From assembly GCF_000150275.1 (NCBI RefSeq), contig NW_002060947.1:790695-854694 (forward strand): a DNA stretch of 64,000 bases. Reading direction: 5' to 3'. Both the position numbers and the translations under genes were made by a program. This document shows, piece by piece, positions 45,176 through 51,102 of the stretch. The DNA comes from Trichoplax adhaerens (Eukaryota; Animalia; Placozoa). The notes below the pieces were generated by a model that had not been told where the DNA came from, made no database searches, and was given only the letters and a program-made list of their open reading frames with translations. Each line of letters starts with the position of its first letter. Position 1 is the stretch's first letter.

Positions 45176-48100
45176 ATGGAAGTTCATGAAGATACTTCGC
45201 AGGTTGGTACAAGTATTCCAGTTGTATAGGCGAACAACTGTTGAATATGAATCGATGTAATCTCAAGAATTATTTTACTCAATCCTTCTTGTACCCAACT
45301 CGGTTCAAATTGCAAGTGATGGTTTAGCTGCTTGTTTGGAGTCAGTTTAGTAGCCTACGGTTGTTGTGAAAAGTAAAGTCTAAGTCATAATAGATCCATT
45401 TTTTTTCAGCTGCTTGATGAGTTGGATTGAGAGAAACGATCTTTAAACAACGTCATTTTCTTACTTGATCATCGTTTTAAAGGCAAATCAGTCACGTTGA
45501 TGAATTAGTATAGTGTAGAAAGTATGATAGACTGTAGTTGGCGTAAAACGGATAAAGTAAGCCCTTCCCGATTGGCTAAAAAAGAGAAAAGAGAAATATA
45601 AAATGACTGTTTTACAGTTTTAGTTATGGTCAATTCTACTTTTATAGCTATTCAATAATCATGATATGAAGAGAGGCTAGGACTTGATCACACTATTGTA
45701 CTTGTAAAGTAATGAATGATGAAAATACGTAGACTTTACTATCGCTTGACAAATATTGGCACTACACAGCAGGCGTATGAAAAAAAAAACTAATAGCCAT
45801 CGATAGTAATCGTACTGTTTTCTTTGATAACACCTTTTAGAAATCGCCTGATGAAATGGACGAAAACAAGCCTGAGACGCCAGTTACTGGTACTGATCGA
45901 AAATCCTTGACATATTCAAGTTATTTAAAGGTATGATCAATTTGTAACAATGCAAGTTTGCTATTTCATTGCGCCGACGATAAACCATTGGATTGATTAA
46001 TTAATTCTTATCAATCATATGGCTAAGTTTCTGTACCATAACTATACAGAGCTTTTAGCGGGGATCTTTTTCAATTTTCTAGTTATTAATTTGATCAACA
46101 AATTACCTCAACGTGTAATAATTATAATCGAAACTGTAATATTGCATCCAACTTGATTTCCTACTCGTCCGAATGATCCCAATATCAGATGACTTTTGTC
46201 AAATATCAGCGTTGATGCTAATGATGAACGAGAATCAACACAATGAGTAAACAACGACGATCCTTAGCCTGCTTGTGTAAATAGTTCTGATTCTCTGTCA
46301 TATTCACTACCTTTAACTGCTAAATATTGTCATACAGTTATCGTCAGTCATTAGAGTTATATCGTTGCTTAGCAATGTGGCTTGATTGAAATCAGAAATA
46401 AATTGTTTTACACTGATTTTACCTAACCAATACATACATGTACACTAATAGCAAGTGGAATGGATACTGTACTGTAGTAAATATGAAGGTGCGAATCGTT
46501 ATTGCTCCGTTTCGTATTGGCTTTACTTTGATTCATGACCACACGATCATCATATGGAACCAGCTGACTTCCGTAAAGTAGTTAATATAAATTGATCGAT
46601 TCTGCCTAATTATTATATAATTACTGAATCATTAAATTAATAATTGTATTCAAACTTGACTGGCATCTATTGGATGATTTCTTTAATTCCAGTCAGCCGT
46701 CACAAGTTTTATACAAATTGTTGACGTATCTTATTTACTTCTCAACAGGTAGATAGCTTACTAGAATTTCAAAAAACACTTACGCCAGTTCATGATGAAC
46801 ATTTATTTATTGTTGTGCATCAAGGTAAGCATGTTGATGATATACTTATTATAGTGATTATTTTCTTGATTATGATCTGCGATGATTTGATAGCATCAGC
46901 ATGGTTAAATGAGTATTTCCATTGTAGTATATATTCGATATTAAGTAGGCATCGAATCGTTATTGTAATAGTAGAGTTCTATCCTGTTTTGCTAACATGG
47001 ATGACTGTATGTTATTACATTATGGAGCACTAGACGTTAGGTCAGTGAACACTAAGTCATAATCTGCACGGGAAGCGTCCCGAGCAAAGCTTGATTCGAC
47101 TGTACTCGTTTTACAGCGGGTATTAGGAAGCTAATTATTATGAGTATTGGAAACTAATAGTATGGCTACACCTTGTAGCCTATAAAATTAGTGTACGATG
47201 AATAGGATATACAGTAGCCTTATGGGCAGCGGCCACTTTTTACTGTGCTTTAATCTACCATTATTTTGTGATTTGGGTATTGAGGTTGGCATTTTGCTTA
47301 CTAGCTATCCTCCGGCAGATTGTGTATCAGTAAAAGTTCTGTACATGCCGAAAGTGCATATCAATTTTTTCGAAAAATTCTATGATTTATAAGATAGTAT
47401 CACACTCATTGCACAAATTTTACACCTTATCCATATAGTAATAAATTTAATGAAATTCTTCAGTTGTGATATAAATTCCAAGCTAGGGACTCAGTAGGGA
47501 CTCTGTTGTAGGTAACAATTACTTGATTAATAAAACAACTGTCAAACTGATTTTACTGCCATGCTGAATTAGGCAGTCCAAATACAGTACTATAGGGTTA
47601 TGCTCCTGTTTTAGAGATAAATGAAAATGTAGGCTATCATAAATTTATTAAGAAGCTAGTAGTCCCACAAATCGAAGGCACTAATATCGGAATACCGTTG
47701 ATGAGGTTGATCACTGATGATCTCTCGAAGATAACCTACATTTTTAATTGCTGTTGTACTTGCTTCTTATAACTTACTGTAAGGTCGTTGTCTGGTGCAT
47801 TAAACATTAACCAAGTACAATTATAGTTGTAGTCTCTTTGGTGCTTTAGGCCAGAGCTTAAATATTGAATTGTAGAATAGCCCTTCCAAACTTAAAATCA
47901 AAGTTGTGTTTTAATTATGATTGCTGTATAATAATATTTTAACAATCTTCTGACTGTTATAGCTTTATTACTGTATCCTTTTCAGTATTCGAATTATGGT
48001 TCAAGCAGATAATATACGAACTGGATGCTGTTTGTAAAGCAATGGATGTTGAGGTAAAGTGACTTAAAATAACTGTAACTTACGGTTACTATTTAAAAAT

Positions 48101-51100
48101 GCCGTCCAATTTTAGACTCGGCAATAATCAGTGATATGTAACCAATCAAGTGGTGAGCTCTAGTCTACTTTAACGAAGCTATACTCGCCCATAAGTTTAC
48201 ACTATTTCGTCACATTACCTGCAATTTCGACTTCGATTACAAGTGCATACGATAGTGCAAGATTTTAAGGATGATTTGTATCAAATTCGTAATTTACAAA
48301 GTTTACTATTAAGTATTGGAACTATTAAGTGTAGTATCTTTAATTTGATCATTAAAATATATATATATATATACATTTTGGACCCATGCATTCTACTATT
48401 TGAAATAATATAACTCGGTATAAATTTTCTTCGACATTTCTAGTGCAAAATGTTATGCAAGCATAATTAAACTGTACTGCTATTTCTTCTAAATCTTTCT
48501 TGTTTTTAGTGCATTAACGATATTAACTTGCTAGTTATTACTGTAAGGACATCCAGAATCGTAAGAATTTTGAAGGTATATTATGATTATCATACACGTG
48601 TATGAGTCTTTCGGTTTAAATTTGCTTTATTGACTGATATTTAATATGTCATCCTATCATTTCTAACAGCTGATGCTTAAACAATTTACGGTTCTTGAAA
48701 CTATACCTGTAACCGATTTTGAAAATTTAAGGTAAACCTCTTTAATACTGGATAGCACTATAAACCAAACATTCTTAAAAGCCATTGCATATGGACTGCA
48801 ATCAAGCTACAGTTTAAAAAAATGCCTCATACATCTTTTTATCACGCTTCCAGTTGGCATAGCATTCCCTTTCTCTCAATTTACAAATTTCATGTTTATA
48901 TCGTAATGTGATTGATGCTTAGAAGTCAAAACTTTACCGCTATTTTGGTATCGTGGCACGCAGTTATTAATCTTTACTAATTCTTAAGATATGCAGTGCT
49001 TTACTGTACTTTCATTGTCATTACTACAATTTTATGTTTAGAATATTATCGTGTAAGACTGTTTGCTTGGTGAAATTATGTATCGATTTTGATTTAAGAT
49101 CAAGTGACATTTATGATATCGATAATCTTCAATTCTCTATTTAGAAATTATATAGGTCCAGGATCTTCTTTTCAAAGTCTTCAGTTTAGATTACTCGAAA
49201 ACATGCTGGGAGTCAAAGATGTGCGTATACATAATTTTATTACCGAGATTATATCTAGCATTATAAGACGAAGTGCGTAATCTATTTACATGTGTTTTAA
49301 GTTAAAGTAAGAGTTTGATATTTATTCTTAATGTATTCTTTTTTAATGCATCGATGTCATTTATATAGAGTAATAGGATGTATGATTCAGGAATGAATTA
49401 CAAGTAAGAAAATCTCATGAACTTAACATTGTTGACAAATGAAGATTCTTTATGATTTATTTGATTAGAATAAATGGCTTATCATTTTAGTATTTAACAA
49501 GCCGGTGATTAACTCTGATATGTAGGAATATATTTAAAGGAAGTGAGCTAGACAGAATTGAGCAATCCGAAAAAGGCCCAACTTTGTTGCAGTTAGTAGA
49601 TGTAAGACAGCTAATGAAAGCATTACCTTATCACTCGCTCAATTAGTCAGTCGTCTGGCTAATTCATGTTGGATTAGCCTCACTTACTTCATTTTGAGTA
49701 ATTATGCAAATTAATGGATTCATTCGATAAATATTGTCCTTCTTAAAGTCTATCATTAAAGTCTGTCCTAAACATATAATTATATTGGTTCTTAGTAATA
49801 CGAAGTACTAATATATCCTTTTACCATAGAGATGGCTTTCTAAGACTCCTGGCCTAGAGAAAGATGGATTCAATTTCTGGTATAAGTATACCAAAGCAGT
49901 TAACTCTTATCTATCTTCGCTACAGGATGAAACTAATGTAATAATCATAAGTTGTTTTTACTGAATTTGTTTTAATTACGATACCTCATTAATATCGAAT
50001 ATTAACTTTATGCTATTTGAATATTTCAGAAAGTTGTAGACCCGGACTTGAGGGAAGAATTAATAGAGGAAAACATAAAAACGGCGGTATGTATCATTTA
50101 CATGGAAACAATTAATACGCCGTATTTCCATAACTGTTCCAACATAACCTCACTGATTCGTAGAGATGATTAATTTGATTAATCCAAATTGTTATTTTTA
50201 TCAAGGAATTGTTCGAAACTATTCTAGTTAGAGAAAAACATGATGAACTGGTTAAAAATGGTAATAAAATTGTATAAATTGTGAGCAATACGTTATATTA
50301 TTGTGCATCTAAAATTTACGGATGTGTAATATAATTATAGATATTCGCATGCTATCCTATAGAGCTATTCAAGGGGCTATATTGATAACTTATTTTCGGT
50401 AATTGATTATACACCTTTCTTCATTTGTGTATTTATGAGTACAGCTCAAGTATATCTTATTTAATCTTTACTTTCACCCTGATATGGATCCAATTTGGAT
50501 TTTCTACTACATAGCACTGAGGCACAGTTAAACCAGCGGTATCATTATTTAGTATTGCTTATGGATCTGGAGACGTATTTAGCACAGTGGCGACGTAAGG
50601 CAATTCTAGATCTGTATAATTCGTTTCCGAATTATTTCCTACTTATAAATTTATTCAATCTCAGTTAAGTACAAAGTCTGCCCATTCATCTTCTGTTAAT
50701 TCTCTTATTGATCTACCAGACAATCTCGTCTTATTAGCCCGTCGCTTTGGAGATCAAGCCAAAAATTACGGCTTTTCTGGTTATCGATACTTCACGTCTA
50801 CTTTTAGGTAACTCACAAGTAGAAGTTAAAAAAGTAACTAAATGCGTATACTCATATGTCAATTACTTAACTCAAAATTGGTATCATAACTGGTGTTTAC
50901 TGTGTATGTTATAATTAAGATCATTGCATTGAACAGTGATTGATAATTTGTAACGTGTTTTTATTATCCATTTAGTAACCGCTATGGAATATTTAATGAC
51001 CTGTTTAATATATCGACTTTCCTTCCCCCAGCAAAATTTTTTCCTTCTCAGAAACCCTCACAAAATAATACCTCTAAAAGAATAATAAATGAGTGGCAAT

Positions 51101-51102
51101 AA
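45176..51102 (+). CDS. TDO-like paralog B (16 exons), intact frame, lacking the proximal heme His and GTGG loop
   Basis: Intron positions and phases match copy A across the conserved core. [34 protein letters not shown] and WLSKTPGLEKDGFNFW are retained, but the heme region reads WRHNLVLLARRFGDQAKNYGFSGYRYF. Stop at 51100-51102. First exon (MEVHEDTSQ) is inferred. Confidence 0.88.

Follow-up and report, generated by a model that had tools for sequence, protein, structure and literature searches.

What maintains a gene that has kept an open reading frame and complete splicing while losing the residues that hold its cofactor? This question is raised by a pair of genes in Trichoplax adhaerens encoding proteins of the tryptophan 2,3-dioxygenase (TDO) family. 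TDO is a textbook heme enzyme, whose axial His and GTGG loop are invariant in the 116 animal sequences compared here. A stretch of 64,000 nucleotides (contig NW_002060947.1, positions 790,695 to 854,694; hereafter the window, in whose coordinates positions are given) contains two TDO genes arranged in tandem on the plus strand, which we will refer to as copy A and copy B. Copy A is a canonical TDO gene. Copy B, a clear homologue of the enzyme, has lost the residue that is essential for holding the cofactor, and an initial annotation of the window, made from its letters only, had proposed that it codes for a non-catalytic or neofunctionalised TDO. Based upon the analyses described below, we consider it probable that copy B is a selectively retained, heme-free and non-catalytic paralogue with a TDO fold, i.e., a pseudoenzyme.

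Loss of the proximal heme site in an intact gene

A splice-constrained reconstruction of copy B yielded a spliced length of 1149 nt (382 amino acids) with a TAA stop codon at 51100-51102, and the 16 in-frame exons free of stops described in the initial annotation were recovered with GT-AG introns throughout. The exon coordinates and sequence statements that it gave for the two genes all hold, with the frames beginning one or two bases inside the exons; for exon 15 the reading frame is that of position 41402 in copy A and 50701 in copy B, and not that of the first bases of the exons. The model of copy A consists of 15 resolved exons extending from 37784 to 41728, with further 5' exon(s) lying upstream of 37784. 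When the open segments of both regions were all compared locally, 13 colinear exon pairs were identified, and all 15 of the A and B exons that were compared are colinear, with equal lengths and splice phases except for exon 15 (91 versus 88 nt) and the terminal exon (124 versus 127 nt). The spliced proteins of both copies were joined for translation, alignment, tree construction and residue counts, and the database searches and folding employed single exons or database proteins. The two genes and the altered region of copy B are as follows:

37733..41728, plus strand: copy A, canonical TDO gene TRIADDRAFT_25841 (= P0049), 121/131 family-invariant residues kept
37784-37822, 38086-38161, 38359-38426, 38839-38904, 39045-39106, 39607-39682, 39918-39952, 40048-40123, 40343-40450, 40584-40640, 40732-40786, 40931-40988, 41201-41280, 41421-41511, 41605-41728, plus strand: resolved exons of copy A
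45176..51102, plus strand: copy B, complete TDO-like gene, 16 exons, 382 codons, open frame, GT-AG introns
45176-45202, 45841-45930, 46749-46824, 47986-48053, 48510-48575, 48670-48731, 49145-49220, 49369-49403, plus strand: exons 1-8 of copy B
49526-49601, 49830-49937, 50030-50086, 50206-50260, 50341-50398, 50515-50594, 50720-50807, 50976-51102, plus strand: exons 9-16 of copy B
50720..50807, plus strand: exon 15 of copy B, with rewritten proximal helix and JK loop (H-N-L-VLLARRF-G-DQA-KNYG-FSGY..), 10/20 family-invariant residues kept versus 20/20 in copy A
50725..50727, plus strand: Leu314 of copy B, codon CTC, replacing the axial heme His (human His328) in a column that is His in 116/116 TDOs
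50761..50772, plus strand: K326-N327-Y328-G329 of copy B, replacing the G-T-G-G tip of the JK loop (human 341-344), which in copy A lies at 41465-41476

In copy A, exon 14 ends with TGG CGA T (followed by gtatgt) at 41280 and exon 15 starts, after cag, with AT AAT CAT at 41421, giving W-R-Y-N-H, the final residue of which is the proximal ligand His288 (codon CAT, 41426-41428). In copy B the corresponding exon ends with TGG CGA C (followed by gtaagg) at 50594, and the next one starts, after cag, with AC AAT CTC at 50720, giving W-R-H-N-L. The replacement of the His codon at 41426 by a Leu codon at 50725, which the initial annotation had reported, is thus seen at the splice junction as well as in the alignment. 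Its further statement that the GTGG sequence is gone and one residue has been lost was also confirmed: KNYG is found instead, and the absent codon of exon 15 lies after the His position and before the first Gly of the JK loop, hence outside the loop, which is equally long in both copies and reads G-D-Q-A-K-N-Y-G-F-S-G-Y in copy B. The change from SGFQS in copy A to SSFQS in copy B was likewise found as described, with Ser138 (49167-49169) replacing the equivalent of Gly152.

The roles of these residues in human TDO are taken from two published studies (PMC5071832; PMC8518741), and the human residue numbers are our own count on the human sequence, cross-checked by alignments with Protein Data Bank (PDB) structures and against the residues named in these papers. 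In the human enzyme His328 is the heme ligand and the Thr of GTGG clamps L-Trp by binding its ammonium group (PMC5071832), and a His328Ala change abolishes activity (PMC8518741). Of the features expected in a competent TDO, the axial His and the GTGG tip with its Thr are both absent from copy B.

The extent of the divergence was assessed using an alignment of both copies with 116 canonical animal TDOs, in which 131 columns are at least 95% invariant. The proximal His is present in 116/116 of these TDOs, Gly341, Thr342 and Gly152 are each 100% invariant and Gly343 is 99% invariant. Copy A has 121 of the 131 family-invariant residues, and copy B has 92 (70%), with 39/131 changed. The losses in copy B are clustered in the proximal-heme third at the C-terminus, with 65 of 82 invariant residues kept in amino acids 1-283 versus 27 of 49 in amino acids 284-382 (Fisher p=0.005). 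Many of the replacements are conservative. On the proximal side, several are bulkier or aromatic (His to Leu, Met to Phe, Gly to Tyr, Ser to Phe and Leu to Phe), and to judge by the residues involved these would fit a filled-in heme cavity. When exons 15 and 16 of copy B were each searched alone, neither gave a TDO match in Pfam or the PDB, whereas exon 15 of copy A alone scored 52 bits (E 2e-10); their lack of matches reflects divergence and not the absence of homology.

Origin, relatives and predicted fold of copy B

In a maximum-likelihood tree (25 rows, LG+G4), copies A and B branched as sisters with support values of 100/98, and the branch leading to copy B (1.23) was 4.6 times longer than that of copy A (0.27). 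The two proteins are 52% identical over 353 aligned residues, with a single in-frame codon indel. Copy B, on the basis of this branching, is a tandem duplicate of copy A that arose in the placozoan lineage and has evolved faster. The mean identity of copy B to the 116 animal TDOs is 40%.

A genome-wide profile search of the 105.6 Mb assembly (1,414 contigs) revealed a third TDO-like locus, copy C, which lies on the minus strand about 250 kb upstream (G000:C1410:535278-541556). This copy has kept the proximal His (S-H-AAMVHK), reads G-L-A-Q in place of G-T-G-G, is without TPGLE and has a branch of more than 2.6; its HDEH exon was not found in the 15 kb of sequence examined. Like copy B, it is a lineage-specific TDO-like gene with a rewritten GTGG loop. 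However, copy C is far more divergent and has kept the His and lost TPGLE, whereas copy B has kept TPGLE and lost the His.

An exhaustive protein search with exon 10 of copy B gave a sole match of the copy B type, the near-identical RDD42454.1 (P0001), which is annotated as 'Tryptophan 2,3-dioxygenase A [Trichoplax sp. H2]'; the other 47 matches were short canonical fragments from other animals. In addition, when the last 97 amino acids of copy B were used in a word-based search of 5.8 billion proteins, covering those of 275-875 amino acids, only copy B itself was found. Another protein, P0024, was considered as an ortholog of copy B and rejected, as it was traced to the Logan contigs L010/L011 and is an ordinary SPASGFQS-type TDO of a low-GC animal. 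These contigs (SRR31895888, SRR31895884) are short, have a GC content of 34% and encode a canonical-type TDO (..SPASGFQSWQFRLIENKLG..), in which the exon corresponding to exon 10 of copy B is 57% identical.

The H2 protein contains the exon chain of copy B, including MEVHEDTSQ-KSPDEM.. (the hyphen marking the exon junction) and ..WRHNLVLLARRFGDQAKNYGFSG..., and its gene carries the identical HNL..KNYG sequence. The annotated protein is 500 amino acids long and has a block of about 118 amino acids present twice. We have rejected this internal duplication as a biological feature. At the H2 locus (L009:14180-16316, NOWV01000054.1) the repeat flanks a scaffold gap of 20 N (15348-15367), its copies are equivalent to window positions 49356-50525, and the second copy is an allele about 3% diverged; the two allelic copies were both spliced into the protein model, and the repeat is hence an assembly artefact. 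The H2 gene models were produced with MAKER on the basis of evidence that included transcriptomes (PMC6057997), and this origin supports the transcription of copy B only indirectly.

Membership of copy B in the TDO family is supported by several comparisons made with this H2 protein. It scores 406 bits against PF03301 (cut-off 34.9), a score that is inflated by the artefactual repeat, although its first stretch alone spans profile positions 4-278, and it matches insect and human TDO structures in the PDB with E values from 6e-98 to 1e-76. A structure model produced by AF2 (52-sequence alignment; pLDDT 77, pTM 0.71) was matched by Foldseek to Drosophila and human TDO (4hka, 6vbn) with TM scores of 0.87-0.88 and an rmsd of 2.8-3.0 A. 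In this model the helix equivalent to alphaJ (residues 406-440 of the H2 protein) is predicted with confidence, and disorder is seen in the rewritten loop (443-448), with pLDDT below 50. The all-helical TDO fold is thus predicted to be retained in copy B.

Many of the other functional regions of TDO have also been retained, and the exons in which they are found are listed below:

45841..45930, plus strand: exon 2 of copy B, N-terminal arm ..LTYSSYLK with the Tyr42/Tyr45/Leu46 equivalents (Y34, Y37, L38) kept
46749..46824, plus strand: exon 3 of copy B, Phe72 and His76 equivalents (F59, H63) kept; highest A-B identity of the exons, 76%
48670..49220, plus strand: exons 6-7 of copy B, Phe140 and Arg144 equivalents (F126, R130) and Ser151 (S137) kept, Phe143 changed to Leu and Gly152 to Ser (SSFQSLQFRLLEN)
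49830..49937, plus strand: exon 10 of copy B, exo-site helix W194-L-S-K197-T-P199 (human W208, R211, P213)

The N-terminal arm, which in human TDO completes the active site of the neighbouring subunit through Tyr42, Tyr45 and Leu46 (PMC5071832), is a feature of competent TDOs that is present in copy B. In the region of alphaB the identity between the two copies is about 79% by a hand count, versus 52% overall, and because the interface helices are relatively conserved and this arm is intact, hetero- or homo-oligomerisation of copy B is plausible. Five residues of the distal and substrate pocket are kept (F59, H63, F126, R130 and S137), while Gly152 has become Ser138 and Phe143 has become Leu. 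The HDEH..HQ motif, the equivalent of the substrate-binding Arg144 (in ENLR-NY, the hyphen again marking a junction) and FQSLQFRLLEN were all identified in copy B by the alignment, as the initial annotation had indicated, and so was the D/W/K version of the exo Trp site that it had described. In the latter site Trp208 and Pro213 are kept and Arg211 is replaced by Lys, Glu105 by Asp and Arg303 by Gln. The last of these, which in the human protein pairs with the exo-site Glu105, corresponds to codon 289 of copy B (50525-50527), where H1 has CAG (Gln) and H2 has CGG (Arg). As this position is Arg in 99% of the family, the Gln is a recent change in one strain at an otherwise invariant site.

Constraint on copy B and the alternative readings

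Two strains, and also a partial third allele, carry copy B with an intact open reading frame, start codon and set of 30 splice dinucleotides. In order to evaluate how readily this could occur by chance, neutral decay was calibrated on 13.4 kb of noncoding DNA compared between H1 and H2, which gave 0.011 substitutions per site and 0.15 indels per substitution, 78% of them frameshifting; for copy B, 5.4% of single-base changes create stops and 60 splice-site bases are at risk. With these inputs the probability that a neutrally evolving copy B would still be intact is 0.04 at a divergence (d) of 0.012, 0.005 at d=0.02 and 2e-6 at d=0.05. Between the two strains, no indels are present in 2.2 kb of A and B exons, versus 23 in the 13.4 kb of noncoding DNA. 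Further, although copy B has undergone about 1.2 substitutions per site at the amino-acid level and exon 15 has seen half of its invariant positions change, only one indel, which is in frame, separates the gene from copy A. It follows that the heme site was dismantled long ago and that the open reading frame has been preserved since then. Set against neutral decay, the integrity of the frame and splice sites speaks strongly in favor of long-term selection and excludes a long-dead pseudogene, where this exclusion covers an old death of the gene and not a very recent loss of function.

Several points weigh against the reading that copy B is a selectively retained, heme-free paralogue. The structure model was built on the H2 protein carrying the artefactual 118-amino-acid repeat, long-term constraint was deduced only from the integrity of the open reading frame in a comparison of two Trichoplax strains, and no T. 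adhaerens copy B protein of at least 275 amino acids was found in the protein database search. Between H1 and H2 the exons of copy B differ at 6 of 1,149 sites (0.52%; four nonsynonymous and two synonymous changes), giving a ratio of nonsynonymous to synonymous change (dN/dS) of about 0.5 that is based on six changes and does not differ statistically from 1. In the introns, 57 of 4,765 sites (1.20%) are different, or 2.3 times the exon divergence, a contrast for which p is only 0.053. The partial second H2 allele adds four nonsynonymous and two synonymous changes. Lastly, the equivalents of Phe140 and Ser151 and the whole distal pocket are retained, and heme could still bind in some other way. 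Of these points, the dN/dS value and the missing annotation, together with the 4.6-fold longer branch and the Gln present in one strain at the Arg303 position, also speak for the view that copy B is still intact by chance only, as a duplicate that is non-functional, decaying or silent. We nevertheless regard this as unlikely. The frame, start and splice sites are intact in all of the alleles compared, the neutral probability of this is already less than 1% by d=0.02, whereas the amino-acid substitutions in copy B amount to about 1.2 per site, its exons are less diverged than its introns and free of indels, most of the family-invariant residues have been kept with many conservative replacements among the others, and the changes at the heme site are too numerous to be recent.

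A second alternative is that copy B binds heme through another ligand, such as His312, the loop residue Tyr328 or a residue on the distal side, and has an altered chemistry or substrate. The retention of the distal pocket and of the equivalents of Phe140 and Ser151, which anchor heme (PMC8518741), is in accordance with this, and copy C, which has kept its His but has also rewritten the GTGG loop, suggests that the family may be exploring new specificities. The initial annotation had favored His312, lying two residues before the ligand position, as a possible new ligand, and it is this part of its proposal that was not borne out. At position -2 the 116 TDOs have Tyr (111), Ser (2), His (2) or Ile (1), and in both of the canonical TDOs with His, of which the sponge Sycon (WRHNH) is an example, it occurs together with the true ligand; the His312 of copy B is thus ordinary variation within the family. 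In the AF2 model His312 is on the same long, confident helix as position 314 and two residues away from it, so that it points elsewhere and is a poor candidate for a replacement ligand. In view also of the loss of half of the exon 15 invariants and one codon, and since our literature searches found no heme-binding member of the TDO family that is without the His, we consider heme binding of this kind improbable. It is scarcely credible that the gene model is an artefact, in which another exon restores NH..GTGG or exons of A and B have been mixed; apart from the general unreliability of models built by hand, nothing points to it. A tblastn search of the 45-54 kb region with exon 15 of copy A detected only copy B's own exon 15 in the proper order, and no alternative exon restoring NH..GTGG, a possibility that the initial annotation had itself raised, was found there. 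The weak matches in intron 3 (47102-47131 and 47317-47373; E about 0.1) are at chance level, out of frame, out of order and lack GTGG. Moreover, intron 14 spans only 125 nt and intron 15 only 168 nt, and the identical exon chain is used by the H2 model, which is independent and evidence-based.

A putative pseudoenzyme of tryptophan catabolism

Based upon these results, the most probable history of copy B as a retained, heme-free paralogue may be outlined as follows. Tandem duplication of a canonical TDO gene in the placozoan lineage gave rise to copy B, which has been retained as an intact protein-coding gene. The axial His, the GTGG sequence with its Thr clamp and, in the proximal region, about half of the invariant positions have been lost from it. 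Its product would most likely be a heme-free TDO fold that is unable to oxidise tryptophan, and it keeps the helical core of the tetramer interface, the Y-x-x-Y-L arm, the distal pocket and most of the exo Trp site. In view of these retained parts, the likeliest activity of an expressed copy B protein would be a non-catalytic one, consisting of oligomerisation (with itself or with copy A), Trp binding, or both. The broader proposal of the initial annotation, a non-catalytic or neofunctionalised protein with a TDO fold, thus agrees with our results in that copy B is an intact, old duplicate with a dismantled proximal site and loop. More tentatively, copy B may be a heme-free regulatory subunit in mixed tetramers with copy A, in which its arm would complete the active sites of A and its pocket or exo site would sense Trp, tuning the entry into the kynurenine pathway in a manner similar to a prozyme or to the alpha and beta subunits of soluble guanylate cyclase; this specific role is possible but has the smaller share of our confidence.

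Paralogues that have lost a cofactor-binding or catalytic residue and are kept by pairing with the active paralogue include the alpha subunit of soluble guanylate cyclase, versus its heme-binding beta subunit, and the AdoMetDC prozyme of trypanosomatids. These differ from copy B in having unrelated folds, and the pairing of copy B with copy A is only a hypothesis. Another comparison is provided by IDO2, which is sometimes discussed as a pseudoenzyme. Like copy B, it is a duplicated tryptophan-dioxygenase gene located beside an active paralogue (IDO1), and its catalysis is much reduced or doubtful (PMC13440583). However, unlike copy B, IDO2 belongs to the IDO and not to the TDO family, keeps the heme ligand and binds heme. 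In comparison with canonical animal TDOs (human TDO2, Drosophila vermilion; PF03301), copy B is homologous over its full length and shares their fold, Y-x-x-Y-L, HDEH..HQ, DF..R and FQSLQFRLLEN, but it differs in having Leu for the axial His, K-N-Y-G for G-T-G-G, Ser for Gly152 and a one-codon deletion after the ligand position. The contrast with its neighbor is of the same kind, since copy A, a tandem gene on the same strand with colinear exons, has kept both the His and GTGG. Our literature searches found nothing on placozoan TDO, TDO pseudoenzymes or TDOs without the His.

Some observations were also made on the surroundings of these genes and on their public annotation. The 3.4-kb region between copies A and B contains a 158-bp tandem repeat (1.9 copies, 93% match; window 44007-44313), with further diverged copies in 43925-44581. 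The public model of copy A (TRIADDRAFT_25841, partial) runs into the intron past 38426 and begins the next exon too far downstream inside 38839-38904, leaving only ..LNRIVRILQ of it (window 38427-38904). Elsewhere in the genome, a gene for 3-hydroxyanthranilate 3,4-dioxygenase is present on the minus strand (G000:C1411:2357917-2358803; PF06052, 113 and 80 bits in two exons), and the kynurenine pathway downstream of TDO hence exists in this organism. A search of the genome with the IDO profile PF01231 gave no match, and its control searches were likewise silent. The present work also corrects the public annotation, in which RDD42454.1 bears the name 'Tryptophan 2,3-dioxygenase A' and includes a repeat derived from the assembly, and copy B is apparently absent from the proteins listed for T. 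adhaerens.

If our reading is correct, copy B would be a natural TDO-fold protein that is without the axial His and is kept by selection, the first such case found in these searches. It would then represent a natural apo-TDO, suited to examining the roles that this scaffold may have without heme, such as Trp binding in the exo site or the active-site pocket, control of stability, or hetero-oligomeric regulation, and it would provide an example of asymmetric divergence following the tandem duplication of a homotetrameric enzyme. Together, copies B and C would be evidence that the first step of tryptophan catabolism is more diversified in placozoans than in the other animals sampled.

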